Shown here one piece after another: positions 10,727 to 62,772 of a stretch of DNA of 64,000 bases; within the stretch, counting starts at the first letter, position 1; every line of letters starts with the position of its first letter. A program made the translations under genes and the position numbers. The DNA is from Azolla caroliniana (Eukaryota; Plantae; Polypodiophyta). The stretch lies in NCBI GenBank assembly GCA_043228905.1, contig JBHGNT010000011.1:17298001-17362000 (forward strand). Direction: 5' to 3'. Below the pieces are notes generated by a model. The model was given only the letters and a program-made list of their open reading frames with translations, was not told where the DNA came from and searched no databases.

Positions 10727-13700
10727 TGTCGAATACATGTGTATAATGGACGTATTCACACTATCCCGTTTTGGCCATTTATGTAATTAGCATAAAGGGT
10801 AGTTGCCCTAAGTCGGTCACTATATATAGTGACCTTGTAACCTTTTTGTAAGGTTGGGTGTTGTATTATTGCTTTATGGAATAAGGAGTCTCTTTGTGCC
10901 TCTCTGTCTCTCTCCCTCTCTCTCTCTCTGTGCAACGACCTACAAACTGTCATACGCAGGTATTCAGAACACAATCAAATGCTACTTGATCTTCCGCAAA
11001 GACGACTTTGTCTCCAACATCTGGTATCAGAGCCTGCACAGTAGTCGGTCCTTCAATCCGCTGTCGGCCGTCGTCTCAGCATTCGGTTTCCTGCGTCATT
11101 CGAAGAAGAGAGAAGAAGAAGAAAAACGAGGCCTGCATCTCATCGCGTTAGATCATCTTTGCTTGGAGTAAGCCAGCAGGTTGTACTCCGTTCCTTGTGA
11201 TCGTAACCGCTCGAGGTGAAATCCCCTTGTGCAACTTTGACACGATCGTGCTCCATTCGGTTAAACGGCATCCGAAGAGGTCATCAAACGCTGCTCGCCG
11301 CTCATTGTAACCACTCGGTGCAGATCGGTCTCAAGACAACAACCCCAATTCGTGCTTCATCCGGCTGATCGACATTCGAGAGGATCAGTTGGATCCATCT
11401 CTCTCGTCGCTGCAGTCACCCGAAGCCGAATCGGTCCAGATAATCGGTTTCAATAATCGGTATTCGGCATATATATCCGAAACGAACCGGGCTCACTCCG
11501 ACTCGGCAACATTCGGGAAGACCAGTCGGTTCTGTCCCTCAAGCTACCGGAGTCAATTCGAGCAAGTTCCGAAGCCGAACCGACTCGGGTTCAAATCCGA
11601 CTAGAACGATATCGGGTGAGCCAACCGGCTGCACTCCAACAAGGTTCGTAGTCAACTCCGAACCGAGCTTCGTCAACCGAAACCAAATTTGATGGCGTCA
11701 ACATCCGGCTCGTCAGAAATGAGTCTACGAAAGTTCGATGGATCGAACTTCAACTTCTGGAAGGAACAAATGCAGGACTATCTCATAGTCAAGGGGCAAA
11801 TCGACCCCATCGAAAATGAAGAACCTCCAGAAGGATACAAACCAATTGAGTGGCAGAAGCTGGACAGAATCGTCCGCGCCACGATTCGGATGCACCTATC
11901 GGAATCGGTATACTTTACGGTGCAATCGTGTACGACAGCATTCGAACTGTGGAAAACACTGTCGGACACTTACGAAAAGAAGGTCGCCGCAACGAAGATG
12001 TTTCTGATCCGGCGCCTCTACAACTTGCGGATGAAAGAATCCGATTCGGTCCAAGCACACCTCAATGAGTACGAAAGCATAAGCTCCCAAATCTCGTCAC
12101 AGGGGACGGCAATCGAGGATGAACTCAGAGCAATGATACTCATGAGCAGCCTTCCCTCATCATGGGAAACTTTCGTCACAACCGTGTGCAACGCGTCAAC
12201 CACGGCTGTTAAATACTCCGAAGTCACGAGCGCAATCCTGACCGAAGCAGCTCGGAGAAAGTCTTTCGCCAAAGACTCAACAGACGACGCTTACGTAGTA
12301 CAAGGTTCGACAGACCGATCGAACATACGAGGAAGAGATTCCTCACGGCCGCCGAACAATCAGCGAAGACGGAGCCAATCACGGGATAACCGAATCTGCA
12401 ACTATTGCAAGAAACCCGGACACATCAAAGCCGACTGCCGCGCACTCAAGAACAAGAACAACAAGAAAAGTGGCCGGCATGAGGAGATCAATTACATCAG
12501 CTTCTCAGCGGATGTACTACCGGACGACCCGAATATACTATCAATCGAAAATCCAGTCGGATCAGAAGTTCTACTCACGACTGAAGAATCGAGCACATGG
12601 CTCTTAGATTCGGGCGCGTCATTTCACGTGACTCCTCATCGATCCCAATTTCGGCAATATACGATCCGTCACTCCGACTCAGTTCGAGTCGGCAACTCAC
12701 AACACTGTGACATCATCGGAATCGGCACAGTAGAGCTCAACCTTGCAGGTGGCTCTACACTTGTACTCCACAATGTCCGACATGTACCCGAGCTCTCAAG
12801 GCCATTGATCTCAGTCGGACAACTAGATGAAGACGGCATTCGTGCCGGTTTTTCTTCGGGAGGGTGGACACTCCACAGGGGGAACCTCCTGCTTGCTAGA
12901 GGACCCAAGATACACTCCCTGTATCCGTTACATGTTACGCTCAGAGAGGGTAACCTGTTTTTGGTGGATATTCCTGTGTCATCACTATGGCACCGAAGAT
13001 TAGGACACCTCAGCAAGGCCGGCATCACGCATCTATCTAGAGCCGGATACATCCCCAAACTCTCCTTCTCGGACCATCAATTCTGCGAGCATTGCCAGTA
13101 TGGCAAACAAGCAGCCGCATCACACCCGACATCAGCACCAAGAGAAACGAGACCTCTTGATTTGGTCCACTCGGACGTCTGTGGCCCAATGCCGCATCAG
13201 TCTCTCGGCGGTGCCTCTTACTTCGTCACTTTTATTGACGATTCAACTCGAAAGGTGTGGGCTTATCCAATTCGCACCAAAGATCGGGTCTTCTCGATCT
13301 TCACCGATTGGCTCGCTATGGTAGAAAATCAAACCGACCGAAAGCTGAAATGCTTTCGGACAGACAATGGGGGAGAGTTTAAATCCGAAGAATTCGTCAA
13401 ATTCTGCCGACAACGCGGCATCCGACGTGAATTTACGGCACCACACAGTCCGGAGCAAAACGGGATTGCCGAACGCATGAATCGGACAATCCAAGAACGG
13501 ACAGTTTCCATGCTCCAACACTCCGGACTGTCGGATGGCTTCTGGGCAGAGGCTCTACTCACGGCAGTACACATAATCAATATGTCGCCAAGTAGACCTC
13601 TAGGACTTCAAATTCCTCAGGAACTATGGATCGGCAGTAAGCCGAATTACGACAAGCTGAGGATCTTCGGATGCGAGGCGTACGCCCTTATTCCGAAAGA

Positions 13701-16191
13701 TGATCGCCGAAAACTTGCACCTCGGTCCAGGAAATGCATTTTCCTTGGATATGGATCCGACGGCGAAATGGGATACCGACTCTGGGACCCCGAACGCAGA
13801 CAAATCGTTCGAAGTTCGGACGTTGTGTTCAACGAGTCGGCTATGAATCCATCAGTCGAAAAACCGATCGAAGTCCGAAGGGTAACATTTTCCGATGTGC
13901 CGACCCTTCAAGAAGGCCCCGCTCTCAACACACGGTCAGCTTCACGGGTAGCCGAACCTTACACTACCGACTCGGACGACCCCGACTCGGCACAGCAGAA
14001 CAATCCGCTTTCGGACCATCCGACCTCGATACCCGATGCGACCAGTCCAATCATACCTCGACGATCCGAGAGACTGTCGCAACCTCCGGAGAGGTATTCT
14101 CCTGGAATTTTCTTCACCGACGCCGGCGAACCGACGTCTTACGAAGAAGCATCGACATCTGTCGATTCAGCCACCTGGCATCTGGCGATGGAGTCGGAAA
14201 TGCACTCCATTCGGGCAAACAAGACTTGGGATCTGGTCGAATTACCTAGGAACCGACGTGCTCTTCCTTGCAAGTGGGTTTATCGACTAAAAGAGACGTC
14301 TGATTCGACCACCCCAAAGTACAAGGCCAGATTAGTTGCGAAGGGCTTCCGACAAGAATATGGCGTCGACTTCGACGAGATTTTTTCACCAGTGGTGAAA
14401 ATGACAACCCTCCGTTTTCTACTCGGCGTAGTGGCAGCCGACAACTTGGAGCTAATTCAGCTAGATGTCAAAACAGCCTTCCTCCATGGTGATCTTGACG
14501 AGGAAATTTATATGGAGCAGCCAAAAGGCTTTGTGGCAACTGGCCAAGAACATCTAGTCTGCCGACTCAGGAAGAGTCTATATGGCCTCAAACAGGCACC
14601 GCGACAATGGTACAAGAAGTTCGACGACTTCATCCAATCGATCGGCTTCTCCAAAAGCGATGAGGACCATTGTCTCTTCACCAACACAGCTCAAGATGGA
14701 TCACCCATCTTCCTCATCATTTACGTGGACGACATGCTAATTTCTGGACGCCACGCGGGCGAACTTGCCGATCTCATTCGGCAACTGCGATTGAAGTTTG
14801 CCATGAAGGACCTCGGTCCGGCACGACACATACTCGGCATGAAGATTAGTCGGCATCGCGACAAACGACATCTTTTTTTGTCTCAGACCGACTACATCGG
14901 ACGTGTCTTGGAACGCTTCAACATGCAATCAGCCAAATCTGCTTCAACCCCGCTCCCAATGAATCTTCGGCTCTCTCAGCGAGACTGCCCGACATTCGGC
15001 CCGGAGGGGGAAGATATGAAGTCGGTACCGTATGCACCGGCAGTCGGCTCCCTTATGTACCTGATGGTCGCGACACGGCCTGATATTTCTCATGTCGTAG
15101 GAGTCGTTAGCAGATTTATGCACAATCCTGGCCGATCGCATTGGAACGCAGTCAAGCATGTGTTCAGATATCTGGCTGGCACAAAAGACCATGGCATTCT
15201 TTTCGGTCCGAACCGAACCTCAGGCGTAGTCGGTTACACCGACTCGGACTTCGCCGGCTGTATAGACAGTCGGAAATCAACAACCGGATACTGCTTCAAA
15301 TTCGGCAATGGAGCAATCTCGTGGAAGTCGAAACTTCAGGAGTGCACAGCGACCTCAACGACCGAAGCAGAATATGTAGCTGCGTCCGACGCAGCAAAAG
15401 AAGCTTTGTGGCTCGGTCGGCTGGCGCACACGTTTCGACAAGTCGATCATGACTCGGCTCCAGTTGTCTACAGCGACAGTCAAGGTGCTGTTGCCTTGTC
15501 GAAAAATCCGGTTCACCACAACGCCTCCAAACATATCGACGTTCGATATCACTTCGTTCGGGACTGCGTCATTTCAGGGAAAATCGGTCTAGAGAAAATA
15601 TCCACAACCGACAATGTCGCAGATGGAATGACCAAGTGTCTTTCGGCAGACCGTTTTCGGTCTCTTCGGCATCAGATGGGCGTAACGACAAACCAGTCCG
15701 GTTAGAGCCGGACACAGAGCAGGATGGTTCCCGACAACCGACATCAGTTCCTTAATGATCGGCTTCAACTGTTCCGACCCGACCAGTTCGGTCTTCTGCC
15801 TTCGGACCCTGCCGACTCGAACAAAGCTGATATGTCCGAGAACCTAAGTCTATACCTGTAATCTTAGATAACCCATGTATACGCCCATTACGGGGGAGTG
15901 TCGAATACATGTGTATAATGGACGTATTCACACTATCCCGTTTTGGCCATTTATGTAATTAGCATAAAGGGTAGTTGCCCTAAGTCGGTCACTATATATA
16001 GTGACCTTGTAACCTTTTTGTAAGGTTGGGTGTTGTATTATTGCTTTATGGAATAAGGAGTCTCTTTGTGCCTCTCTGTCTCTCTCCCTCTCTCTCTCTC
16101 TGTGCAACGACCTACAAACTGTCATACGCAGGTATTCAGAACACAATCAAATGCTACTTGATCTTCCGCAAAGACGACTTTGTCTCCAACA
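10727..16191 (+). mobile_element. Intact Ty1/copia LTR retrotransposon; LTRs 10727-11019 and 15899-16191 (293 bp), tRNAi-Met PBS 11022-11034, PPT 15892-15898
   Basis: TG...CA LTRs identical by eye (ORF-track translations identical at offset 5172). PBS TGGTATCAGAGCC, PPT GGGGGAG, single uninterrupted gag-pol ORF. Confidence 0.97.
11692..15705 (+). CDS. Copia gag-pol polyprotein (about 1337 aa; GAG-PR-INT-RT-RH), Tnt1-like
   Basis: KFDGSNFNFWK, CNYCKKPGHIKADC, WLLDSGAS, LWHRRLGH..CEHC, HSDVCGP/TDNGGEF/EQNGIAER, LDVKTAFLHG, YVDDM, YTDSDFA..EAEY..DSQGA. The integrase precedes RT, which is copia order. Confidence 0.96.
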   Translation: MASTSGSSEMSLRKFDGSNFNFWKEQMQDYLIVKGQIDPIENEEPPEGYKPIEWQKLDRIVRATIRMHLSESVYFTVQSCTTAFELWKTLSDTYEKKVAATKMFLIRRLYNLRMKESDSVQAHLNEYESISSQISSQGTAIEDELRAMILMSSLPSSWETFVTTVCNASTTAVKYSEVTSAILTEAARRKSFAKDSTDDAYVVQGSTDRSNIRGRDSSRPPNNQRRRSQSRDNRICNYCKKPGHIKADCRALKNKNNKKSGRHEEINYISFSADVLPDDPNILSIENPVGSEVLLTTEESSTWLLDSGASFHVTPHRSQFRQYTIRHSDSVRVGNSQHCDIIGIGTVELNLAGGSTLVLHNVRHVPELSRPLISVGQLDEDGIRAGFSSGGWTLHRGNLLLARGPKIHSLYPLHVTLREGNLFLVDIPVSSLWHRRLGHLSKAGITHLSRAGYIPKLSFSDHQFCEHCQYGKQAAASHPTSAPRETRPLDLVHSDVCGPMPHQSLGGASYFVTFIDDSTRKVWAYPIRTKDRVFSIFTDWLAMVENQTDRKLKCFRTDNGGEFKSEEFVKFCRQRGIRREFTAPHSPEQNGIAERMNRTIQERTVSMLQHSGLSDGFWAEALLTAVHIINMSPSRPLGLQIPQELWIGSKPNYDKLRIFGCEAYALIPKDDRRKLAPRSRKCIFLGYGSDGEMGYRLWDPERRQIVRSSDVVFNESAMNPSVEKPIEVRRVTFSDVPTLQEGPALNTRSASRVAEPYTTDSDDPDSAQQNNPLSDHPTSIPDATSPIIPRRSERLSQPPERYSPGIFFTDAGEPTSYEEASTSVDSATWHLAMESEMHSIRANKTWDLVELPRNRRALPCKWVYRLKETSDSTTPKYKARLVAKGFRQEYGVDFDEIFSPVVKMTTLRFLLGVVAADNLELIQLDVKTAFLHGDLDEEIYMEQPKGFVATGQEHLVCRLRKSLYGLKQAPRQWYKKFDDFIQSIGFSKSDEDHCLFTNTAQDGSPIFLIIYVDDMLISGRHAGELADLIRQLRLKFAMKDLGPARHILGMKISRHRDKRHLFLSQTDYIGRVLERFNMQSAKSASTPLPMNLRLSQRDCPTFGPEGEDMKSVPYAPAVGSLMYLMVATRPDISHVVGVVSRFMHNPGRSHWNAVKHVFRYLAGTKDHGILFGPNRTSGVVGYTDSDFAGCIDSRKSTTGYCFKFGNGAISWKSKLQECTATSTTEAEYVAASDAAKEALWLGRLAHTFRQVDHDSAPVVYSDSQGAVALSKNPVHHNASKHIDVRYHFVRDCVISGKIGLEKISTTDNVADGMTKCLSADRFRSLRHQMGVTTNQSG

Positions 16192-24674: not shown

Positions 24675-24749
24675 GGATGTAGCTCAGTTGGTAAGGTTGC
24701 CCAATGGGGAGACTAGGACCAGGGTCATGGGTTCAACCCTTACATTCCA
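24675..24749 (+). ncRNA. tRNA-derived (Ala-like ends) Pol III head, SINE-like or pseudo-tRNA; paralog at about 23821-23890
   Basis: A box TAGCTCAGTTGG, B box GGTTCAACCC, ends GGATGTA...TACATTCCA. The anticodon arm is not canonical. Confidence 0.55.
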
Positions 24750-24803
24750 CAGTGGCATCTAGTGAATTAAAAGAGATATGTATGAAATATATATAATAAA
24801 GAG

Positions 24804-24873
24804 GTGAGGTAACTGGGTTTCGAACCCAAGACACAGTGCTTGTAGTGTAACAACTTACCACTGGGGTAAGGTA
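24804..24873 (-). ncRNA. Second tRNA-like Pol III head on the opposite strand; paralog at about 23931-24005
   Basis: The reverse complement reads TACCCCAGTGGTAAG (A-box-like) ... CTTGGGTTCGAAACCCAG (T-arm/B box with TGGG/CCCA stem). Confidence 0.5.
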
Positions 24874-24939
24874 CTTACGAAAAAGAGAGACACAGAGAGA
24901 TGGATGCGTGCGTGCGTGTGTGTGTGTGTGCGTGTGTGT

Positions 24940-25226
24940 GTGTGTCCGAGAGGCCATGGCATGCCAAGCCAAAAAGACATAGACATATGTGTGTGTGTGT
25001 GAGAGAGAGAGAGATGCCATGCCATTATTTACCACAAAACGGAGAATCATGTGTATATGTGTCTGAGATTGTGCGTGTGTCCGAGAGGCCATGGCATGCC
25101 AAGCCAAAAAGACATAGACAAATATGTGTGTGTGTGAGAGAGAGATGCCATGCCATTATCTACCACAAAATGGAGAATCATGCGTATATGTGTCTGAGAT
25201 TGTGTGTGTGTGTGAGAGGCCATGCC
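24940..25226. repeat. About 135-bp tandem repeat (two copies plus a partial) with embedded GT/GA microsatellites, upstream of the ABCG gene
   Basis: gtgtccgagaggccatggcatgccaagccaaaaagacatagaca...gatgccatgccattat.taccacaaaa.ggagaatcatg occurs twice. Confidence 0.85.
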
Positions 25227-26013
25227 AGCACCACAATCTGCAGTGCTTGGATTGGGGGGGGGGGGGGGGGGGGATATGGAGACCAGTCTTGAAGGTTGAA
25301 TGGGTCAAAGAAAAGATGAGGCAGGGCTATTTTGTTAAAGGGGCGAGACAGACAGACAGACAGACAGAAGCAATGGAAAAAAAGAGCAGGCAGGGGAGGC
25401 GGTTTGGCTCAGTCAACTCTCCTTACTTAAATGGCCCTCCACATCTCACAAAAGCAACAAATCCTTGTATTTGTTTTTACCAAAGTTCCGTCCTTCCTTC
25501 CTTCCTTCCTTCTTCTTCTTCTTCTTGTCGATTTTCATTTTTTTAGATAAGACACAGAAATATTGCTCTGTTTCTCCATCTCTTCACCCATTTCTTGTTT
25601 CCTTCTTTGCTCTCTGTATCAAATTATTCATTAACCATACACACCATGCATGTATGTATGTATGTATGTAGTCTATTCAATATTGTGCCTAGTTTGTAAA
25701 CCCTTCCGAAATTTTGTAAGCTTTTGATCATCTCTCTGTCCCTGTCTGAATGTTACGGTTTTGAAACAGAGCTTTTGCCTTTAGTTTCGCCCATTGATTT
25801 CTCTCCTTTTTCATGCGATTTTCTCAGAGAGGGAAGAGAAAAACAAAGAAGGTTATTGAAATTTCCTGAAGAGATAGAGAGAAAGGGGTTAATTGAATCA
25901 AGCTTAACTCGGCTTTTATCCCAGTCAGTGATTCTCAACACAAATTCGTGGATCTTTGAGAGATAGATAGATAGATAGAAAGAGGGAGTTCATAGTTCTA
26001 TCTATTCATCATC

Positions 26014-29000
26014 ATGATGGACGGGTTTGGCCGGAAGAGTTATCGAAAACTTGGTAAAGATAAGGAAGGAGGAGAAGGGCAAAAGAAGTCAGCTTCAGTT
26101 CAGCTCGGAAATTCTGCATCTGAACGAACTGGCGGCATATCAGTTGGGGGAGCTGAATCTGCACTCACCCGAAGAACACCCCAGTTTGTATCTGCAAGTG
26201 TACGTGCTGGATTAGGCTTAGATCGAGTGGATGAAACAGGGTCATTCGCCTTGGGTAGAGGCCAAGGCCAAGGCCAAGGCCAAAGCCTCAGTTATGGTCA
26301 TGGTCATGGTTACAGTCATGGACAAAATCAAGGTGGCGATGATGAGATGATGGAGGCAGCATCATTGCTGAATGTAGGGTTGAAAGAATGGCGCGAACGG
26401 TCCATAAGCATTGCCATGCAGAGGTCGCGAACAGTTGCAAATTCAGGCCCTGGCGCTGGATTGATGCGGAACCCCACACTTACAAGCCGGAGCCGAGCGG
26501 CCGATAAACTTCGTCAGGCAGTCATAGATGCCACGTCTTCAGTCAAGAATCGGACGCAACTTGTTCTAGGTCAAAACGGTCCCGATCAAGTTGGATCTGT
26601 GCCTACTACTCCGTCCGTCATAGATTTGTCTCCAAAATACTATTCCAACCTTGCACGTGCCCCCCATGCTTCTCTTATCCATGTTGTTATACTTTATCAC
26701 CAAATCTTGTGTCGGAATGGCCTCACAAAAGAAGCCGATCAGATTGCTTCTCTCCTTGAAGGCCTACAAGATGCTGATAATGCTGATGCTGCTGCAGTGG
26801 CAGCTGAACTTCAAGGTATTGATTTGCTTCTCAAAGATGGCCTTCTCAAACTGTACCTGCGCATTCAACCCTACCTTCCTCCTGTCAATAGCCAGGTTTG
26901 CTTTTTCTTTGTCTTTTTTATGACTTTTCTTTGGTTCATCTTCCATTTTTTGCTTGTTTGTTTTGGATGCGGAAGTGTCATTGTGATCAAATTAATTTTC
27001 ATAAGGAAATGGTTCCTTTTGCTTTTCTCACCTAAGATCGAATTAGGTTTCATTCCTTTCCTACTCAAGTCACAGCACCCAAGATATGAAAATTATCAAC
27101 ATTTCCAATTCACAGACCATCTAAGATATGCAATAATTACAACAGCTTTGGAACACAAAATGTCCGGGGGCAAGTTGGTCATTAATGGAATTTGACAAGA
27201 ATAATAAAGAAACTTAAGCTGGAGTTCCATATTATAGAAATCATTAGGCAATTCGTATTAGATAACTGTTTTTTCTGTATCACAAAAGGAAAGAATGAAA
27301 TATTAATGACTTTTAAGAGGTCAAAATGGCCTATGAGACACAATGGGAGATTACACGTGAAAATGTTTTTTTGTCTTTGAGAACAACAAACCAAAATAAA
27401 TATTAACAAATTTGTCGAACTGCATAAGTTATCAGAGAACCTCTCCAGCTAAGCGCTTAAGAAAAAGGCATAGATATAGCACATTGATGTACTCGAAATT
27501 GATTGAAGCATCTCAACCTGTTCTACATCAATAATAATGGCATTTCATGCATCTACACTCCCTTAACAAACACAAGGATTATCCATCACCTTGAGAATGA
27601 CCTAGTTGGTTTGAACCTGGTCTAAAATATCATCACTTCCTCAATTTAGTCCTTGTGTAGTAAGTATAGATGTTTGTAATTCTATAGCATTCAGTGTCTA
27701 TTTTGACACTAAATTAAGCTTTTGATAACTTCTATTTTGCAAACTTTGCTAGATATATGTTCTCCTACATATTTAAAATGACTAGGTATAGCACCTGGGC
27801 TGTTTCCATTCATTTCATTCTCTAAATTATCTTAAGAAATGATCATGGCCAAAACATCAAATTGATTGTGAAAAGACTCAAGAGATTTTATTTTTCAAGG
27901 CACTTTTAAGCCTTTCAAGTATCTGAAGCACATCCAACCTGCAGGAATCTTGAATACCTGACATACTTTAATATGTTGCACCAAGAGAAAATATTGTTCA
28001 TAAGGTCATACTTTTGGAAGCGGAGCATTGTTAGAAGAATATGGGATCTTTTGTAGTCTCTCTGTAGGTTGTACATCCCAATATATGTGTTCGGAATATT
28101 CTCATACATCCGAGAGTCTAATGAAGATGAAATTACGGCCCTTGAAAATTTTATGATGATGATGATCCATGGATTTGATGCTGCAATAGTAGATTTTAAT
28201 TTGAACTAATAGATGAACATATTTTTAGGTAAAAGGAAATGCTCTTGAATAGAACAAATCAAGCTACCATTATTCCACTGTCTTTTCCTTTTCTACTAAT
28301 TGTGCTAGTCTTTTTGAGATTACAGATTGTGAAGTTCAAGTCTTTGACATACTCAGCAAATGTTTTTGTATCAGATGATGCCTATGAAACCATATTAACT
28401 AAAGTAAGTAATGCTACTTAATGTATGAGTATTTTTAAAGCTTGTGATTATTCCTCTTTCACTTCACTAGTGGAGATTTTGTAATATCAGACTTGAACAA
28501 AGACTATTTATTTGCAGTTATTTCACTGTTTAGGGGGGCCTTTCGGGAGAAGGAAAGCACCTCAAAGGATGAAGGTTTTGAAGGATATATCCGGTTATCT
28601 AATGCCTGGGACATTGACCTTGGTTTTAGGTGAGTTACAATATTTCTATATGATCATAAATACGAGTGAAGTGTGTACATGGCATATCCAGCAAGCTGTA
28701 CACCAATATCATATACTAGAATGGGTTTACATGATTTCCTTACAACCAAGAAAATTTGCGTTCTAGTGAAAATGGTCCTCTGAACCTCAAGTTCGTGTAC
28801 TATTTAATTTAGGAAGCTACAATCCTAATGAAGGAAGTATCTATTGAAATGTATCTATTAAGAAGGATTCAATAGCTTTGACTCTGGAACAACATCATAT
28901 GGAGCAACAGTTGGAAAACTCCATGCCAAATGTTTTCTAATATCTAATCTTGTAATGAAAATGGAGGCTTGAAATATGATGACCTAAGTGGTGGCTTTAG

Positions 29001-32000
29001 TTGAAAACGTTTATAGATTGAGGGGACAGTTATAGGAGGCGTGCTTCAAAACTATTAGGTGGAATAAAGTTCTTCATTGGATATAGGCTTCTATTTTAGT
29101 TATGTGTATATGGGGTGCGTATATTCCAAAATTTTCAAATGAATGTCATTCCTAAAACTGCATTTTGTTGTGTTTGCAGGTCCACCAGAGTGTGGAAAAA
29201 GTAGTCTCCACCATGTTCTTTCTGGAAAATTACATGCTGGAGGATCTTATGAAGGCATGATTACATACAACGATGTTCACATGCGCGATACCTCTGTCCA
29301 TCGCTTGGCAGCAATGGTGGACAATATAAATGTCCACTTCCCTCTCCTCACAGTGAGGGAAACACTTGAGTTTGCAAGAGAATGTCTTGTAACCTTCAAA
29401 CCGAAGGATTATGGACCTGAATTACAAGAGATACTGGGAGGAGTATTGAAGACAGGACAAGACCCCGAGGTTGAATTAACTTTGAGCATGATGGGTTTGA
29501 AGCAAGTTGCAAATCGCATTGCCGGCAATGCAGTAATCCCTAGCATTTCGGATGATGAAAGGCACAGGCTAACTGCAGCTGAGATGTTCTCAGGTTCACA
29601 TGCTGTATACTTCTTTGATGAGCTCAACACTGTTGGAGAGGACTTGATCACTTATGATCTTCTCACTTCTATCAGAATTTTAACACGTGTTCGGCAGATA
29701 ACTTTCATGGCTTCACTTTCGCAGCCATCCTCTGAAGTTTATGATTTGTTTGATCGATTAATTCTCCTCAACCAGGGACGCATAGTTTACCAAGGTCCTT
29801 GCCGAGATGCTTTGCCTTATTTTGAAGGCCTTGGGTGAGTTACAATATTACTTAAAACAGAAGCATAATGCTCACTTGTAGATGAAGTTTTGTTGGTGGA
29901 GTGAGAACCTTTGCACATCTCTTAAATGTCATCCAATGTGGACTATGAGATTAGATTGGGTCATTTGATTGACTTGGAACTCTCTTGAACTGGATGAATT
30001 CCAGAGGCTAATTGAGTGAATTCTTAAAGTTTGATGCAATAAATCCCATGTTATCTAGTGGTATTGTGATTAGCATGTTCTTTTTGAAAGAGGCTACTTG
30101 AGGATTATCAATTTTTGTTTTTTGTGATTAAATTTTTTTTATGGCTCGGTCATTCAATGTATATCTTACTGAGATTCTTTAGTTGATTGCACTGGCAGAT
30201 ACAAAAAACCAAGGCATTTAAGTATTGGTGAGTTCTTGCAAGAAGTTACGACAGAAGATGGGGCTGTATATTTACAGCCAGGTTTTAGAAAGCTGAATTT
30301 GGATGAATTTATACTGCTCTATAAAAATTCGGACATGCACCAGGATATTTGCCGAGTTATTGATAGTCAAGGACTACTTCAACAACTGTGGGTACAAGTA
30401 TGTACAAGGCATTCATTCTATATTGGTTCTTTCTTCATTTAGTTAATGATGTGTTGAGGAAGTGGATTGAGTGTTATGTATGCCTTTTTTGGGGGTGGAA
30501 GGGAGGTAGAGAGGGACAAAATAAGTAAATCCCGACTTTTCTATAAATAAGCCTATTTGCGACAAGGGCTAAGATGGATCAGGAGTGCCTATAGGTGGGT
30601 AGGGCATTGTCTGCTAGCAGTAAGTTCAGGATGGAATACTGATACAATGGAGAGGTTTTGGTTATTCATGATCTTCCAATTCTATAAAAAATGTAAGTCA
30701 TAGGTCTCATTGTTCTGAATGTTGTTTTTGGATGTTTACTTGTACCATTCTGTATTCAACAACATCAAACACCACTCCGTTTCAGTGCAAAACTGGAACA
30801 TTGGAAAAGAAACAAGTAGGAAAATGAAAATTGGAAATTGTGAATTTGTCATGGAATCATATATGATAACATTTGTGGTATAGAGAATTTGAGAGGGGAA
30901 AAATCACAAAGTAAAGATCTTGAATGTAGTTTCTATGAAACATTCGTTCAACTTCTACACAAGGTATGTGTGCACTCATTTATTGGAAGCTGGAAATACT
31001 ATGTCTTCAGGGAGAGCAACCACTAGGTGTGGATTTTGTTGAAATTGGTCGCAAGAATGATAGTGGACAGCAATCAAGTTCATATCTCTTATCAAGGTCA
31101 GCTGATAAAGATGGAAGTTTAGTAAATCCTTCCATGGAGCATACTACTACTCCACAAGCTGAGGACAGAGTAATTGCTTATGGTGGCGCAGAGGGGATGC
31201 TTCAATACATTGCTCTTCCTGATTCATCAACACCATTAAAAGAAAACTTATCAAATGCTGTTGCCAATGTTTCCGAACCAGTTCGCTTACAGCTAGAGAG
31301 ACGGTTCACGAAAGTAAGAAACTATTATTGAATTAAATTCGCTCACTGTTATAGTGCTGAAATTGTTTTGCTTTTCATACCTGATGCTTGACAAAAACAA
31401 TATCGTGACATGTCTTTACTTCTTGTACAGCCAAATGCAGATTTCATGAATAAGCATGGAGATTATGTTCTTGGATTGAAATCAGAAACTTTTCTTCTGA
31501 TGAAGCGTGAATTCAATGTCACATGGAGAAACAAATTCGGTCTATATATTAGACTTTCGCAAGTATGTGTATTTTTCTCCTATCATCAGCGTCCTCAAAT
31601 TCACTGAATGGGTGGTAGATAAGGCATTAGCATGGTTTATAGTGTCTATAAAAAGATTATATAATTTTTCTCTCCTGGAAAATAGTAATGCCTTTTTTTT
31701 TACTTCCTTGTTTATTTTAGATTTATATACTAAATGTTTCCTCTTTATTGTTTTGGAAATATGCAGGTAATGATCCTTGCTCTCTTTCTTGGGTTTTTAC
31801 TGTTTAGGGTGAAGCATGATGCTGACCAGCGGAACATGAATCTCTACCGGACTGCCTTCTTTCTTTCTGTCTTGAATATGACCTTATTCAATTTGGGCCA
31901 TCTTCCTGCACTTATGGATGAAAGAAACATATATTACAAGCAACGAGGAGCTCGCTTCTACCGTCCCACATCGTATCTTCTTGGAAAGATTGCTGGGAGT

Positions 32001-35000
32001 TCTTTATTTTCTATCTGTGAGGTGACAGCTTTTACATTAGCTTTTTGCATTTTTTGTGCAAGCATATTTTTACAAGAGCCATATCTGGGGAAGTGAAAGA
32101 GGCATTGATTTGCATTAATTTGTGGATTGATATCTCTTTTCAAAATGAATATGCAAAATTGATAAGTTTAGTGAGGACCATCAAGGTTCTATATTGTGAT
32201 CTGTGTTGAAACATCTTAGCTAAGGGCCTCAGTGCATCTAAAAGAAGTCAGTATTGTATTCTATATCATCCTCCAGTATTCTCTACTACAATGTGCCTAT
32301 TCTAAGGTAACATTTGGGTTATTACTTTTTGCTAACAGAATCATAATAAAGATTAAGATGGAGAGTTTCATCTGGTGTCATTATTCATTTCCTTAATTTG
32401 TCTTTTTGATTATTGTAATAATAGTTTAGGTCTCATAGGTCAGTAGGACTTCTTAGAGACATTAGTTTTCCTTCTTAACTCAGTGTTAAGACACTGCCAT
32501 CTTATGAGTGGGTACTTATGGTGCGGGGTTGTACAATTTTGGGCATGCTCAATGCGTTGGTTTCCAATGCATTTTGGCCTCTTAAAAGACGTTAATATAT
32601 TTCTTTCTTTCTTTCTTTCTTTCTATCCATAGCTAAGTTTTGAGGTACATTTAACTTATTTTATTGCTTGTTTGCTTATTCCTGACAGGGCACAATCTGG
32701 ACTTTTCTAGTTTACTTTCTAACTGGCATGAGTCTTGGAAATGGAGGACGCCACTTCTTTATATACTATGTGATTGTTATTCTGACTGTCTTAAATGGTG
32801 CATCAATGATACGGTTCTTGAGTTTTGCCTTTCCAGATAAAGATAAGGCTGGCTTAGTCATAGGTTAGTGGGATTGATATAAATTTTTCCCCTTCTTTTA
32901 GTTGAGATTATGTAAATGTAAGGATATACTGAAAGTTTCTCTTTCATTTCAGGTGTCTTTGTGACTCTCTTTATTTTATTTAATGGGTTTCTTCTGCCTC
33001 GTTATCAAGTTCCGAGCTACTGGATTTGGGTTTATTACTTAAACCCATTGCAGTGGGCTGTTACTGCACTGGTGGTTAATGAATTTACCTCTCCTGACTA
33101 CGGCCTACCATGTCAAAATGTTTCCAATAAAACATTTATCCCTCAATGTCTGAGGTTTCCAAATGAATCCATTGGCCATGCATGGCTGCTGAATGCTCAG
33201 ATACGCACAGACACTAGGTGGATTGGCCTTTCTGTTATTGTATTGTTTGCGTGGTTAGTGGTTTGGAACATTCTTGCATATTTTTCTATTAGCAAGATCC
33301 AGCATGCCAAGATATTAAAAACGCTCAAAACTTTTCACACTGAGGCAACTACACTCACCTTGTCCCTTGTTTGTAAAGAAAAAGGTTATCAAGGTTTGAT
33401 GTCTAATTGTTGTTGTGTCACTTTCATTACTATTTTTCAGAAAGAAAGTAGCAAGCACTCAGCAAAAGAAGAAGATGTCGAGAATGGAGTGATGCAGCTG
33501 TTTCTTATGCCCATTCCTGTCACTCTATCATGGCATGAATTAAGTTACGATGTGATATTACCTGTCATTAAAAGACCACGCACAATTCTTAACTGTGTTT
33601 CTGGATGGGGTGAACCAAATGATATGGTAGCCATCATCGGAGGCCAAGCAGCTGGAAAAACAACACTACTTAATTGTTTGGCAGGTATAATTTATAGAAA
33701 TCTACCTGATGATGAAATATGTTGAATCAGTACCAATGAAACAAACCAGTGAGCTATATCATATGTTTTGCCTGAAATGTGTGACTGAGCTAGGAGGAGA
33801 GGGCTTTTATTTCTTCCTAGTATGATGCGTGAGTTAATCTTCAAGGCTAGAAGTACAAAATACATGCTAGTAGCATCGTAGAAAAGTTGAAAGTGCATTT
33901 TCCATGAGTGTTTGTAAGTAGGAAGTATTTTATTTTAAACAGATGCTAGGGTAGGCCTCATGCTGGACTTTGTTGCTTCAAAATGCCATAGATCATTGCC
34001 CTTGTTCATGTTGTCTGGCTAATATCTTTCTTGTTGCCACAATACTTGTAAGAATACTTTGAAGGTATATTAAAATACCTTATTGCTTGTTTGAGATATC
34101 ATGCATCCTGAATCTTGTTGCATGTTTCACGTATCATACTTTGACTGTTGTTCTAGCTGCAAATATCTTGAACTTTTTTTGTTGCTGGCACAACACATTA
34201 GAATACTGGAATTTGACTTTTCTCACTGTTGACTACTGAAATGTGGCAAATGCAAGCTAAAAATCTTGGCTCTCTAGCTTCTAACAATTTGTGTTCATGT
34301 CTGCAGGACGCAAAGTGTTAACTGAAAGGATAGGGGGCCAAATATTAATAAATGGTGTTCCAAAGTCACAGTCAACTTTTGGCCGTATCATGGGATATGT
34401 TGATAAGATAGAGGCATATACGCCTTATATGACTGTGAAAGAGACGGTAGCCTACAGTGCAGCCATGCGGCTTGGGAAATCTTGTTATAAACAAAGAAGA
34501 GATCAATATGTTGAAGAGGTAATTGTGAGCATATATTGTGAGTTCCACGTTGTTGTTTCTTTTTTGTATCTTACCACTCTGTTTTGAATGCCATAAAATG
34601 ACATGCTTCACGTTTATCTTTTTGCTCATCAAACTGTTTCAGAAGTTTTAATTTGCCTTTGCTGTTCTTTATATATTGTAAAATGGTGAGGAAACTTTGA
34701 TGAGGTTTTCACATTTTGGTCCTTCCAGGATTTTATGTGATATTGCCATGGTTGAATGTCTGTCTTGTCAAGAGAGCATTAGATGTGTAATCTTTTCTCT
34801 ATTTTTACAAATGGTAGTAGTCTTTCTATCTGATGGTAATGCAGCTTTTACATATGATTCTGATTGTTGAATATTTTACTGGTCCTTCTCTTGTTAGGTT
34901 TATGTATATTATATTATTCACACATAATTGAGAATTACCTCAACAAATAGTCAATGTGGTTAAAATGCACAAAATACAGGTTTATCCATTGGTATCAGTA

Positions 35001-37691
35001 GGGTTGAGACTACACTTAGCCTAAAATTATAGTATCTTACGTCTTAAACTGTGGGTCTTGTAAATTTATCGTACTTCTGAGGGAACGAAAAACCTCTAGT
35101 TTACATTCTCCTACAAATCTTCAGGGAGACATAATCATAGTTGATACCTTAACAAAATGCTATAGGACAACAGGCACTGTACATCACATTATGCTTTTCA
35201 TCTAGTGACTACTTCAAATAGTAGGTCTAACTCAAGTATTTGATCAGGTTTTGGAAGATTTCAGTTATTGTGTGATTCTTTATTCTTGGCTTTTTTTTAT
35301 ATTTGCACATATTTCTTTATTAAATCTTCATTCTTGCAGGTTTTGGAATTGACGGAACTCAAACCATTAGCCAATGCGCTTGTTGTTTCTTTAATAAATG
35401 ATGTAACATTTGATCAAGAGAAGAGACTTGCTATAGCAGCAGAATTAGCTGCAAATCCTAGTGTGCTCTTCTTGGATGATCCAATCAAGGGTCTTGATAG
35501 TCTGAGTGCTCTTCGGATCATTAAATGCCTTCAAGTAAGTGTAGATTTATTATTAACTAACCCACTGTGACGTTTCCGTCCATCTCTTAGCTAATCATGA
35601 GTATATTTTATCCTAACTATTTTCTTTTTAAAGACATTTTTTTTCTGTTACTTGCATTTGAGGAGTTAATATAAGCCATTTGTGTAACCTTTTGTCAGAT
35701 AATACTGTTCTTTTATCTGATTTTATCTGTGCTTATGCAGCAAATAGCAAATACAGGGAGAGTCGTCTTAGTAACACTAAAATATCCTACACAAAGGATA
35801 TTGTCAGTTTTCACGAAGGTGCAGATATTGAAAGGTGGGGAGACTGTATACTTTGGAGAAGCGGGAAAGGACTGTGAGATGATCAAGGTAACTTATATAT
35901 ATGAACTATTACTAACTACTTTATGAGACTCCAAAAACTTTGGAGAAAAGACCAGAATGCCCCCAAAAATCGTAAAAACCTATCAGAATGTAAAAATTTA
36001 AGGACTTTGAAGGTTTTCTTTTAAACGTCGAAGTATTTTGAAGGTTTTCATTTTCCCCCTTAAATATAGTTTAACAATCTACACAATATTTTTAAAACAT
36101 TCTGTTTTGGTACAGAACTACTTTGAGGCCATCCCAGGAACACCTCCATGCCCCCCAAATAAGAGTGTCCCAACTTATGCCATTGACGTGATTGGTTCAC
36201 GCAGTGCATTTAGATCTCCGAAAGATTTTGCATTCGAGTATCGTATCAGTGAACTCGCCCTTCACAATCATGTACAACTTCAGCGTCATTTGCGTGCAAA
36301 AGGTGGAATACAAGTCTTCGATCGTAGTGTTAATATTGTTTCGACTTTTTGGCAAACCTTTATCTCCATCCAAAGGCAATACTGGAGGAATATTAACTAT
36401 AGCTGGGGTAGAATGATTGGCTTTTTGCTTCAGAGCATCATACTAGGATCAGTATTTTACAATATTGATATTCGTACGACCACTGGAATGAACTCTCGTT
36501 CTGGTGCTATCTTTATAAGCTGTGTTTTGGTGGGAATGACAAATGCACAAAATGTGATTCCACAAATGATCCAAGTGAATGCGGCTCAAAAACGAGAACG
36601 TGCAGTGAAACAGGCTCGTGTCTCTTTATACAACATTTCCTATACCCTTGCGGAGGTAGGCCATGCCAAATCCCTCCCCCTTAACTTAATGATGATGGGT
36701 ACTTAATATATATGACAAGTCCTTGCTTGCTTACTAATAGCTAGGTGTGCATTTTCCTTTTTAACGCAGATACCCTATGTGATGGTTGCAAATTTGCTGT
36801 TCTGTAGTATATTTTTACCAATGACAAAAATCTCAGTTGAATCTTCAGGCCAGGTTTTCAAGTACTGGTTCCTCTCGTCGGAGTATTATGTTGTGGTCAC
36901 TTTTGTTGGGATGTTTCTGACTGCTATTTGCAAGATACCTCAGGTAACTAAGAAGCATTTATTATTTGAAATACATGTGTATACATGTACAGATTCATGT
37001 ACCACATTAGCCAAGACCATATTGCATCTACCTATACACATACTTATAAGCTATACCATATACCTCATCCATATCTCTATGGCTTTTGCATATACCATAT
37101 TCTGATACTGCATACATATGGAACAATACATCATACATATATACCAATACCATTTACCCCATATGTCAAACCTATGGCCAAATACTTAAAACTGATGCAT
37201 ATGTGTGTGTTGTAATGCGTTCCCTTGAAGTGTAAGATGACATTATATGATTGTGGCATTCCATACAGATTGCATCTGTGCTGGTACCAATAGTGGTGGG
37301 AATATGGGTAGCAACCGGGGGGCTAGTTGTCCCAAGGAACAGGATTCTGTCCCAATTCCTTGGAATTTACTATACAAATCCATTACAATATGCTCTAGAT
37401 GGTCTTACCTCAATAGCTTTCTACTGCGATGTCAACAAGGCTGCGTGCATGAATAATGGGATGAATGCGGACTGCAAGCTTAACCAAAATGCATGTCCTA
37501 GTTGTGATTGCCCACGGCTCAATGACTCGACGCCAGTCAACACATTTGTGTGGACACAAATCTCTACTAACCGGAGCCTAGACTACAACTGGGTTGGTTA
37601 CGATATGCTCGCGCTTGCAGTTGCTGCTGTTATCATACGTTTTCTCACCTTCTTGGCTGCTAAATATCTCAAACACAACAAACGGACTTAA
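26014..37691 (+). CDS. Atypical full-size ABCG/PDR-type protein (NBD-TMD-NBD-TMD), about 1705 aa. Exons 26014-26895, 28326-28403, 28518-28629, 29180-29834, 30199-30397, 31011-31313, 31431-31562, 31767-32021, 32689-32863, 32953-33344, 33441-33684, 34307-34518, 35340-35534, 35741-35887, 36116-36655, 36770-36943, 37269-37691
   Basis: VLKDISGYLMPGTLTLVLGPPECGKSS, LTVRETLEFA, EVYDLFDRLILLNQGRIVYQGP, FLQEVT, ERNIYYKQR, WIWVYYLNPLQWA, PVTLSWHELSYDV, AGKTTLLNCLAGRK, ELAANPSVLFLD, YFEAIPG, QYWRN. Exon lengths sum to 5118 nt with phase-consistent junctions. Intron 33345-33440 is a tentative GC-AG intron. Confidence 0.88.
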
Positions 37692-60089: not shown

Positions 60090-60526
60090 CGCTCAAGGGT
60101 GTTCCTTTTCTCCTGTGAGAAGACGGTATTCTTCTTTTCTCTGTTGCTCTTCAATGTATACCTAGCTAGCCCCTCATTTTCATTTCCTGTTTTTATTCTT
60201 GCAATTTGCTCTTTTATTTATTTATTTTAGGGTTTTGTCAAAAAAAGAAAAGGAATCGATAATAAAGAAAATCCCAAACACCATGGCCTCCTTCTGCGGG
60301 GGTATTGATTGATCTGTCGAGAAAAAATAGAACAGAAACATTTTCCCTTCTCTCTGTAGTTGATCATTGAACAAAAGAAAAATAGAGGGGAAAAGGGAAG
60401 GAGAAAGAAGAGGAAGAAGAAAGCTATGTTTTTTGAATAAAAGGATTTGGTCCTTTTGTGAAGTTAACAGGAGGAGGAAGAACTAATTAAAAAGAAGGGT
60501 CATTGTTCAAAAGTAAGAAGCCATTC

Positions 60527-62772
60527 ATGGCTCAGCTAATCTCTATACAAGAAGCTAAGGAGAAATACAAGCATAGTCCTGCGCATTTTGCGATTGCTTG
60601 TGGTGACCATGAGTCACTAAAAACTATACTTTCACGCCTTCCAATTCTGCCCAAGGCAGGAGACGTGACAACTGAACAGGAATCTGTTGATGCTGAAGAG
60701 GCAGCTGATAGGGTCTCGTATGTCGTGGATCGCCGTGACGTACCTGGGCGTGAAACCCCCCTTCATTTAGCTGTCCGTCTTAATGACCCTGTATCTGTGC
60801 AAATGCTCATGGCCTCTGGCGCCGACTGGAGCCTCCAAAATGAGCATGGATGGAGTGCCCTCCAAGAAGCCGTTTGCTCTAAGCAAGAAAACATTGCTAT
60901 TATTATCACTAGGTTCTATCAACCTTTTGCTTGGGCGAAATGGTGTCGCCGATTGCCGAGAATCACTGGGGCCATGCGTCGGATGCGGGATTTCTACATG
61001 GAAATCACATTCAATTTTGAGAGCTCGGTCATACCTTTCATTAGCCGAATTGCACCCTCAGATACATATAGGATATGGAAACGAGGATCGAATCTAAGGG
61101 CTGATATGACCCTCGCCGGATTTGATGGATTCAAGATCCAACGGTCAGATCAAAGCTTCTTGTTCCTTGGAGATGGGAGTGAAGATGGTAAGGTTCCACC
61201 CGGATCTCTTCTAGTGTTAACCCACAAAGATAAAGAGATTAGTAATGCACTTGAAGGGGCAGGTGCTCAACCTTCTGAAGCTGAGATCGCTCAAGAGGTG
61301 GCTACAATGTCGCAAACCAATATGTATCGGCCAGGAATTGATGTTACCGAGGCGGAATTGGTTCCTCAACTTTCGTGGAGAAGGCAGGAGAAAACTGAGA
61401 TGGTGGGTCTGTGGAAAGCTAAGGTTTACGATATGCATCATGTACATGTCAGTGTGAGGTCTCGGAGAGTTCCTGGAGCCATGACAGATGAAGAGCTTTT
61501 TGCCTCTGAAGCCGAGGCTCAAGGAGAACAAGAAGATGATTATACAGAGTTTTTGACTGAAGAGGAGAAAAAGCAGTTAGAGAATGCTATGATGGAAGAA
61601 ACAGGGGATGATGATGATGAAGATGATGCTGAAAGATGTAATGGTACTGACAACGAGGCATCAAACTCATCAAAGCATGAAAAGAATGATTCAGTGGTGG
61701 GCTCACAGAATTCCGTCCGAGATCAAAAGAAAACTCGATGGTTTGGATTCAGTAATAAACAGAAAGGCGATAAGAAACAACCTCCTGGTGCTAACTTGCA
61801 AAGCAGCGGGGAAGTTGTGAAATCAGAGTTGAATTTGGGCAAAGAAGATGCTTCAAAAAAAGGTTACAAGGAATCTCCTGAATCCAGCAGAGAGAATACA
61901 GATGATACATATGTAAATAATACTTCAGCAGATGAAATTCTGAAAAAAGGTAAAGGGAAAAATGGCGGAAGAGTTGAGGGTATCAAGGATAAGAAGAATC
62001 AAGTCTCTAGCAGCAACAATGGCAATCTCGAGAATGAATACAAGAAAGGTTTGAGGCCTATACTCTGGCTAACCCCCGATTTCCCTCTTAAGACTGAAGA
62101 GTTATTGCCACTTCTTGATATTTTGGCCAACAAAGTCAAAGCGGTTCGCCGTTTGAGGGAGTTGCTGACCACGAAGCTACCTTCAGGAACTTTTCCAGTG
62201 AAGGTATGAGTCATCAAATTATTAAAATTTGGGCAATGTAGGCTCTTTTCAAAATGATATGAATGGAGTTTCCAAATTGAGCCATACTCTGTTTTTTCAA
62301 AAGCACATTAGTGGAGCTACCAAAATTTGAGTCATGTAGTTTCTTTTCAAAATCAGACTCATATAAACTTCTTAGAGGAATCTTTTTTCAGGTGGCAATT
62401 CCCATTATACCTACGATACGTGTGGTGGTCACATTCAATAAATTCGAGGAACTAGCAAATTCAGAAGAGTTTGGCACACCACTATCAAGTCCTGCCCACT
62501 TCTCAGAGTCCAAAGGCAAGGAGAATAATGAGACATCTATTTCTTCATCAGGTTCATGGTTATCATGGATAAAGGGTAGTTCAAGAGATCAAACATCTTC
62601 AGTTCAAGAAGATTGCATCGAAGACATTGACCCTTTTGTCATTCCTACCGACTATTCATGGATTGACTCGAAAGAGAAGAAACGACGTTCAAAGGCCAAG
62701 AAGGCTAAGAACAAGAACCTCAAGAAACCCACACTGAAACCAAAAGAATTAGATGGAGAGGTTAAGGAATAA
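60527..62772 (+). CDS. Ankyrin-repeat protein of the ANKRD13 family (about 685 aa); exons 60527-62203 and 62392-62772
   Basis: YKHSPAH, RETPLHLAVRL..GADWSLQNEHGWSALQEA, DFYMEITFNFESSVIPFISRIAPSDTYRIWKRGSNLRADMTLAGFDG, PDFPLKTEELLPLLDILANKVKAVRRLRELLTTKLP.GTFPVK|VAIPIIPTIRVVVTF. Confidence 0.9.

Follow-up and report, generated by a model that had tools for sequence, protein, structure and literature searches.

How does a full-size ABCG protein operate once the residues with which its relatives split ATP have been replaced? The question is raised by a gene in a 64,000 nt stretch of Azolla caroliniana DNA (JBHGNT010000011.1:17,298,001-17,362,000; hereafter the window, to which all coordinates are relative). 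The gene occupies 26014-37691 on the + strand. Its spliced model has 17 exons, encodes 1705 aa and contains no internal stop, and Pfam domains follow one another in the order nucleotide-binding domain (NBD), transmembrane domain (TMD), NBD, TMD (two ABC_tran and two ABC2_membrane matches), the architecture of full-size ABCG proteins of the pleiotropic drug resistance (PDR) type. A first reading made from the sequence alone (the original prediction) had placed at 29180-35887 a gene of 17 exons and about 1700 aa, with no stops and clean splice sites, for a selected ABC protein that no longer hydrolyses ATP. The locus, the exon number, the length and the clean frame all hold, and the span proves larger than proposed. 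That the gene is selected is borne out. On balance we favor an ATP-binding protein in which hydrolysis is very slow or absent and the bound nucleotide controls the conserved membrane domains; this part of the prediction stays conditional, being strengthened by the family pattern and tempered by acidic residues at both catalytic positions of the Azolla copy.

In ordinary PDR-type proteins, ATP is split at site 2 alone, which is built from the Walker A, Walker B, Q-loop and H-loop of NBD2 together with the signature of NBD1. Indeed, mutation of the NBD2 Walker B Glu in Pdr5 (E1036Q) leaves no ATPase activity, the other site being deficient in it (PMC6533308), so that site 2 is the sole engine of PDR-type proteins. 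We established the motif correspondences by alignment to solved ABCG chains (AtABCG25 and Cdr1) and to canonical relatives, and translation of the spliced model recovered every motif at the coordinates originally proposed. Both Walker A motifs are retained, GPPECGKSS in NBD1 (28629-29205, interrupted by an intron) and GGQAAGKTT in NBD2 (33639-33665), the latter fitting the GxxGxGK(S/T) requirement. The NBD1 signature reads ISDDE (29545-29559), with SGG changed to SDD, opposite ISGGE of AtABCG25 and VSGGE of Cdr1. Neither Q-loop contains Gln, which is replaced by Asn in NBD1 (MVDNINVH, 29314-29337) and by Lys in NBD2 (YVDKIEAY, 34396-34419, where YVDK aligns with Y(V/C)EQ). In the NBD2 Walker B, LDDPIKGLD (35472-35498), the catalytic Glu is Asp (codons GATGAT, 35475-35480), and in the NBD2 H-loop, TLKYPT (35774-35791, aligned with TIHQPS), the His is Lys. 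All these replacements agree with the original prediction. It had also described the NBD1 Walker B/D-loop, FDELNTVGE (29614-29640), as altered; this is correct for the D-loop, to which the change is confined, and incorrect for the Walker B, where the Asp-Glu pair is retained (FFDE).

Site 2 thus lacks the Walker B Glu, the Q-loop Gln, the H-loop His and the (V/I)SGG(Q/E) signature of NBD1. Site 1 shows the asymmetry typical of the PDR type, with an NBD2 signature without Gly-Gly (VTFDQEKR, aligned with LSVEQRKR or LSTEQRKR) and an NBD1 H-loop without His (SLSQPS, opposite SIHQPS of the solved proteins; ASLSQPS aligns with SLLQP of canonical relatives). As judged from these alignments, the missing NBD1 His and the degenerate NBD2 signature are normal in all PDR-type proteins, and the unusual part is the second site, which is normally consensus.

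The same losses recur in a family of related proteins. The Azolla sequence entered the searches exon by exon, and the spliced model served for alignments and trees. An exhaustive HMMER search with the NBD1 exon against 1.84 billion representatives returned a top group at E-values of 1e-72 to 1e-53, followed by a drop, with Riccia fluitans, Spirogloea, Chlorokybus, Selaginella, Tasmannia and Mesotaenium among its named sources. A word-indexed search with the Riccia protein also gave a sharp boundary, family members scoring at least 1057 bits and the next match 412 bits. The ortholog search proposed along with the original prediction found the same motif losses in full-length proteins of liverworts, a moss, a lycophyte, ferns and algae. 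We refer to this group as clade A. Its liverwort members come from two Riccia species (including KAL2613833), Marchantia paleacea, M. polymorpha (MpABCG27, Mp7g16260) and Calypogeia; its ferns besides Azolla are Adiantum nelumboides (L7F22_024855) and Ceratopteris with two loci (KP509_01G092800 and KP509_35G047300); and the others are the lycophyte Diphasiastrum (O6H91_18G028200), the moss Physcomitrium, the algae Spirogloea (SM000021S06414) and Mesotaenium, and several unnamed transcripts. Sequence identity with the Azolla protein amounts to 57-60% for the other ferns of the clade and 38-48% for its remaining members.

In trees built by quick search, with Shimodaira-Hasegawa-like approximate likelihood ratio test (SH-aLRT) values as the only support, Azolla is sister to the other ferns, and the fern group (100%) nests in a land-plant group (100%), which in turn nests in a clade A that includes zygnematophytes (100%). 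Clade A was monophyletic at 100% SH-aLRT in three trees, one of them from the membrane domains alone; since that tree has the same topology, the grouping is not due to convergent changes in the NBDs. Classical plant PDRs form a separate clade (100%), and the Azolla protein falls in another (99%) with Cymbomonas, Chlorokybus and Riccia 020884. Neither the exhaustive search of representatives nor the word-indexed ones returned a seed-plant member of clade A; one of the latter, that with the Riccia protein, also missed the sister clade described below entirely, so that its negative result counts for little by itself. Together, the searches and trees indicate that clade A, or the MpABCG27-like group, is an old streptophyte subfamily of full-size ABCG proteins, annotated but undescribed.

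Residues needed for splitting ATP and residues needed for holding it have fared differently in clade A. The counts below are over 19 clade A rows (18 where so given), and changes of state are the minimum on the tree.

NBD1 signature, first Gly: kept in 0 of 19
NBD1 signature, second Gly: kept in 2 of 19
NBD2 H-loop His: kept in 1 of 19 (an unnamed alga-like row, Logan P0003)
NBD2 Q-loop Gln: kept in 2 of 18 (two Marchantia proteins)
NBD2 catalytic Glu: kept in 9 of 19, with D, N, S, A or G in the others; at least 4 changes of state
NBD1 catalytic Glu: kept in 5 of 19, with Q, H, N or S in the others; at least 3 changes
NBD1 Walker A Lys: kept in 14 of 18 (the losses include Diphasiastrum)
NBD2 Walker A Lys: kept in 16 of 19 (the losses include Adiantum)
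NBD1 Walker B Asp: kept in 17 of 19
NBD2 Walker B Asp: kept in 16 of 19

The canonical sister proteins carry VSGGERHRVT, DEISTGLD and SLLQP in NBD1 and GSSGAGKTT, Y(V/C)EQ, LSVEQ, LDEPTSGLD and TIHQPS in NBD2. They thus combine a consensus site 2 with a degenerate site of the PDR style. The motifs that replace them in clade A are themselves conserved: GYVDK(I/L)(E/D)AY extends from leafy liverworts to ferns, FD(E/Q)LN is nearly clade-wide, and T(L/M)NYPSQ is found in ferns. The Azolla protein has the shared derived states of the clade, namely a P(S/T)xxxxExHR signature, an FDxLN Walker B, a YVD(K/R/P) Q-loop and no NBD2 His. It differs from the other ferns in having Asp-Asp where they have Glu-Asp, Lys where they have Asn and Asp-Glu where they have Asp-Gln; at the catalytic positions, the other ferns have Gln in NBD1 and Asn in NBD2. 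Two environmental fragments, 66-71% identical to the Azolla NBD1 exon, have FLDELN and a Gln-less Q-loop in common with it.

For ABC_tran, the summed Pfam score is 76-101 bits in clade A and about 134 in canonical relatives; for ABC2_membrane, the two groups are equal at about 225 and 221 bits. Domain-wise conservation within clade A equals or exceeds that within the canonical group. By these profile and alignment measures, the erosion is specific to the NBDs and spares the membrane domains; overall, the positions that bind Mg-nucleotide are retained, and those that split it vary freely. For the PDR_assoc motif, which belongs in the loop after TMD1, results were mixed: the fern ortholog P0168 exceeds the cut-off with 33.5 bits, MpABCG27 stays below it with 21.9 bits, and the open reading frame (ORF) of Azolla exon 10 gave no PDR_assoc match at E<=0.01.

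The gene is transcribed and spliced. Eighteen public runs contain part of the probed stretch; in the top three, 0.38, 0.38 and 0.33 of the sampled words are present, near the exonic share of the stretch (about 0.46). Contigs from four of the runs, which belong to four studies and bear four coded organism labels, were aligned over 29895-35894 (6000 letters) and confirmed nine joints between 30397 and 35741, which are all the junctions inside the aligned stretch. Because the contigs skip introns at proper splice sites, they derive from spliced RNA. None of them has a base change in the NBD2 motif codons, so there is no RNA-level recoding that would restore the motifs. The final model combines ORFs, splice signals and homology (tblastn and Pfam), with boundaries set by the spliced contigs wherever these reach. 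Its exons, with the evidence for each, are as follows.

Exon 1, 26014..26895, +: start codon and a low-complexity N-terminal extension of about 290 aa (ORF, GT donor)
Exon 2, 28326..28403, +: first beta-strand of NBD1 (AG/GT sites, continuous frame)
Exon 3, 28518..28629, +: part of NBD1, through the first Gly of Walker A (AG/GT sites, tblastn matches)
Exon 4, 29180..29834, +: NBD1 core with Walker A, Q-loop, signature, Walker B/D-loop and H-loop ASLSQPS (Pfam, PDB)
Exon 5, 30199..30397, +: region after NBD1, FLQEVT helix (joint 30397->31011 in 4 runs)
Exon 6, 31011..31313, +: linker insert of 101 aa between NBD1 and TMD1 (both junctions in runs X1, X2 and X18)
Exon 7, 31431..31562, +: start of TMD1 (joints 31313->31431 and 31562->31767)
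Exon 8, 31767..32021, +: TMD1 (Pfam ABC2_membrane, 54 bits; joints)
Exon 9, 32689..32863, +: TMD1 (joints 32021->32689 and, with a cut shift, 32863->32953)
Exon 10, 32953..33344, +: end of TMD1 and extracellular loop (Pfam ABC2_membrane)
Exon 11, 33441..33684, +: linker and NBD2 Walker A (joints, motif position)
Exon 12, 34307..34518, +: NBD2 Q-loop region (joints 33684->34307 and 34518->35340; alignments)
Exon 13, 35340..35534, +: NBD2 signature VTFDQEKR and Walker B (joints; covered by all 4 runs)
Exon 14, 35741..35887, +: NBD2 H-loop (joint 35534->35741)
Exon 15, 36116..36655, +: region after NBD2 and start of TMD2 (Pfam ABC2_membrane, AG/GT sites, contig loose end)
Exon 16, 36770..36943, +: TMD2 (AG/GT sites, frame, tblastn)
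Exon 17, 37269..37691, +: end of TMD2, Cys-rich extracellular loop and stop codon (Pfam ABC2_membrane)

Exon 1 has no Pfam match; its region 26350-26898 is matched in tblastn by Riccia, Spirogloea and Logan relatives. Exon 4 finds the solved ABCG25 and Cdr1 chains at E-values of 1e-19 to 1e-20 and also aligns to Pdr5 and ABCG5/8 structures (overall range 1e-14 to 1e-20). Its 3' end is joined to exon 5 as a contig loose end (at 30198) in all four runs, and loose ends past 35887 correspond to the first 30 bases of exon 15, again in all four. The exon 5 donor is set by the contigs at 30397, 6 bases beyond the alternative 30391. Exon 6, for which run X3 shows the upstream junction alone, looks constitutive. 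Its linker has a counterpart in clade A relatives and is weakly conserved (27% identity to Riccia), and no Pfam family matches it at E<=0.1, which leaves an assignment as PDZ-like unsupported. In exon 13, runs X1, X2 and X18 are identical to the window, and run X3 carries a pair of silent changes, neither of them in a motif codon. Exon 17 has 50% tblastn identity to the Riccia protein.

The 96-base intron at 33345-33440, the single GC-AG intron of the gene, is removed by splicing in all four runs (joint 33344->33441). This intron is in frame and free of stops, and its retention would put 32 extra residues in the linker between TMD1 and NBD2.

A neutral or decaying gene is not what the sequence variation suggests. 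Between contigs and window there are 39 exonic differences, of which 29 are silent and 10 replace an amino acid, and the silent fraction expected under random single-base change in the aligned exons is 22% (binomial p 8e-12; 1.5e-7 against a generous expectation of 33%). The replacements are mostly conservative, five lie in exon 6, which is the most variable exon, and no variant falls in a motif codon. The ratio of nonsynonymous to synonymous substitution rates (dN/dS), which the original prediction had put forward as a test, is placed crudely at about 0.1 by these variants. A comparison of two Logan transcripts of a fern ortholog (L001 and L002) is uninformative for dN/dS: at 99.6% identity they differ in 4 silent and 7 replacement codons, and a single species is their probable source.

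Together, the silent excess and the spliced transcripts show that the gene is expressed and under purifying selection, and that it is no pseudogene. The idea of a recently inactivated gene whose frame survives by chance would draw on the number of altered catalytic motifs and on the low ABC_tran score of the NBD1 exon (36.6 bits). It is ruled out, and has a negligible probability in our view, given 5118 coding bases without a stop, 16 canonical introns (15 GT-AG and 1 GC-AG), spliced contigs in four runs, the 29 to 10 ratio and a family with the same motif states from algae to ferns; the original prediction, too, had denied that this is a decaying pseudogene. Nor can the odd motifs be put down to a wrong choice of exons or to an intron read as coding. 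The contigs did revise two boundaries derived from sequence (the exon 5 donor, from 30391 to 30397, and the in-frame intron 33345-33440), which is the kind of error such an artefact requires. However, all the exons with NBD2 motifs and their junctions are present in the spliced contigs, the NBD1 core lies within a single uninterrupted exon, and homologs from annotated genomes align without gaps through the motifs; an artefact is thereby ruled out and is, to us, the least probable explanation of all.

The more serious alternative is an ordinary ATP-driven exporter, in which the remaining acidic residues and the intact P-loops sustain hydrolysis, perhaps with site 1 now the active one. Walker A is intact in both NBDs, the NBD1 Walker B Asp-Glu pair is found in the Azolla copy and in the two environmental relatives, the membrane domains are as well conserved as those of canonical relatives, and sites with Glu changed to Asp can hydrolyze ATP slowly (PMC7756269). 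However, neither the H-loop His nor the Q-loop Gln is present at site 1, and the signature that partners it (VTFDQ) has no glycines, as in the non-catalytic site of canonical PDRs. Furthermore, no catalytic carboxylate is conserved across the family, and the repeated independent changes at both Glu positions can be argued to mean that hydrolysis is no longer under selection, an argument at the level of the family that does not settle the case of the Azolla copy itself. We therefore consider the exporter rather unlikely. The inference of non-hydrolysis is strengthened by the Gln and Asn of the other ferns and by the four or more changes at the NBD2 Glu.

Several observations weigh against a protein that binds ATP without appreciable hydrolysis. 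The loss of hydrolysis is, for every member of the clade, something that we infer from residues. The NBD2 Glu is retained in members from Marchantia, Riccia, Diphasiastrum and Spirogloea, and the Azolla copy is acidic at both catalytic positions (Glu in NBD1 and Asp in NBD2), so that some slow hydrolysis is possible. The H-loop His of Pdr5 is not known to be strictly needed for ATPase activity, and its loss alone is weak evidence. The variants pooled in the selection test may be those of alleles, of homeologs or of close species. The run records are labeled "RNA? (a guess)", with no tissue, and the contigs carry no expression level. Finally, exons 1-3, 16 and 17, and exon 15 past base 30, are supported by splice signals, frame and homology and not by reads.

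How a protein with such NBDs might work can be proposed from better known systems. The change from Glu to Asp is typical of degenerate sites, where very slow hydrolysis remains, and loss of the His and an altered partner signature are likewise standard marks of such sites, at which ATP is held for long and split far more slowly than the transport cycle (PMC7756269). A D-loop mutant of TAP binds ATP without splitting it and acts as an ATPase-deficient, nucleotide-gated facilitator (PMC7756269). In clade A, site 2 has lost the signature glycines, the Q-loop Gln, the H-loop His and, in ferns, also the catalytic Glu, and with them probably its function in splitting ATP. The retained Walker A Lys and Walker B Asp would still allow Mg-ATP to be bound at both sites. 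Nucleotide binding would then presumably set or stabilize the conformation of the membrane domains rather than power fast pump cycles, and the resulting role might be that of a nucleotide-gated facilitator, a slow translocator of lipids or metabolites, or a regulatory partner. Among channel, regulator and scaffold, the roles suggested by the original prediction, the present findings favor none over the others.

Classical PDRs (Pdr5, Cdr1, NpPDR1 and ABCG36/PEN3) share the NBD-TMD-NBD-TMD order and the degeneracy of site 1 with the Azolla protein, and fern orthologs also have a PDR_assoc motif. Unlike the Azolla protein, in which each of these is altered, they have a fully canonical site 2 (VSGGQ/E, DEPTSGLD, TIHQPS and EQ in the Q-loop). 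The degenerate sites of TAP1, of ABCC proteins (nucleotide-binding site 1, NBS1) and of Pdr5 (NBS1) resemble the Azolla sites in the change from Glu to Asp, the replaced His and the altered partner signature, and they bind ATP tightly with slow or absent hydrolysis (PMC7756269, PMC6533308). In those proteins, however, one site is degenerate and the other drives transport, whereas the Azolla protein is altered at both. CFTR, SUR and the TAP D-loop mutant offer precedents for nucleotide binding that gates a pathway or regulates a partner (PMC7756269), but they belong to other subfamilies with the type I exporter fold, and CFTR and SUR still hydrolyze ATP at one site; the analogy is one of mechanism, and we claim no membership.

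The closest counterparts are MpABCG27 and the other clade A proteins, which have the same architecture, long N-terminal extension, linker and lost NBD1 signature glycines as the Azolla protein, differ from it in sequence (38-60% identity) and are functionally uncharacterized. MpABCG27 has been recorded as a phosphoprotein, named "AtPEN3 homolog", whose phosphorylation is increased in Marchantia bir mutants (bioRxiv 10.1101/2024.08.14.607940), and hence the protein of this ortholog exists in vivo. We found no literature on clade A or on doubly degenerate plant ABCGs beyond this passing mention of MpABCG27, in a search that most subscription journals lay outside.

A second group, clade B, is sister to clade A at 98-100%, also by membrane domains alone. 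A search with the Tasmannia protein found it in Selaginella (D8R1T0), Diphasiastrum, Calypogeia, Adiantum, Cryptomeria and Taxus, and among flowering plants in Amborella, magnoliids (Magnolia and Tasmannia), many eudicots (Vitis and Camellia) and grasses (rows P0007 and P0290-P0347, automatically named "ABC transporter G family member 31/36/37/38/39/43-like"). Both clades are present in Adiantum, Calypogeia and Diphasiastrum, and the neighbors of both in the tree are proteins with canonical motifs from Riccia, Chlorokybus and Cymbomonas, the classical plant PDRs being clearly separate. Like clade A, clade B is degenerate in both NBDs, with the signature glycines lost (ISDxDRQKLT) and the NBD1 catalytic Glu lost (YDQP). 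Unlike clade A, it reaches seed plants, its NBD2 Walker B reads FLEEP, and its angiosperm members have a rebuilt Walker A in NBD2, GGSKxSKxTL; with such a motif, nucleotide binding by the NBD2 of angiosperm clade B proteins is itself doubtful.

It is conceivable, and we suggest it tentatively, that clades A and B form a streptophyte-wide family of full-size ABCG proteins which abandoned hydrolysis before land plants diversified and have since persisted, over hundreds of millions of years, as proteins that bind nucleotide without pumping, such as gated facilitators, receptors or regulators. If so, they would make up a class of ABC "pseudo-ATPases" so far unrecognized in plants. PDR-type ABCGs are regarded as pumps with one consensus ATP site; clade A has eroded that site too, under purifying selection and from algae to ferns, and the similarly eroded clade B is present in crops and trees. 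Were hydrolysis truly lost, plants would possess ABC proteins whose action depends on nucleotide binding only, the two clades would provide a natural system for probing what "degenerate" sites do in asymmetric ABC transporters, and automatic labels such as "pleiotropic drug resistance protein" or "ABCG36-like" would be functionally misleading. Marchantia, with MpABCG27, and Physcomitrium offer tractable genetics.

Two minor features of the contigs were seen. Over the aligned stretch, run X1 differs from the window at 33126 alone, an A>G change that replaces Asn with Asp at codon 989, in the extracellular loop, and that could be an allele or an RNA-DNA difference. Runs X2 and X18 have contigs at a depth of 2-3 over 34596-35297, within the intron between exons 12 and 13, which could be unspliced pre-mRNA or traces of DNA.

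Elsewhere in the window, an uninterrupted ORF of 1338 aa (11689-15705, +) encodes a Ty1/copia polyprotein with gag, integrase and RVT_2, and looks like a young long terminal repeat retrotransposon; the block around it, at about 8-16 kb, is GC-rich (about 51% versus about 37% in the rest of the window). Some 0.8-1.3 kb upstream of the ABCG start codon, at about 24700-25300, is a tract of dinucleotide-rich repeats whose ORF translations are runs of HTHTHT and CVCVCV. Downstream, a neighboring gene is probably represented by one large exon, an ORF of 568 aa (60503-62209, +) that matches ankyrin repeats and the C-terminal domain of ANKRD13 (E 8e-94).

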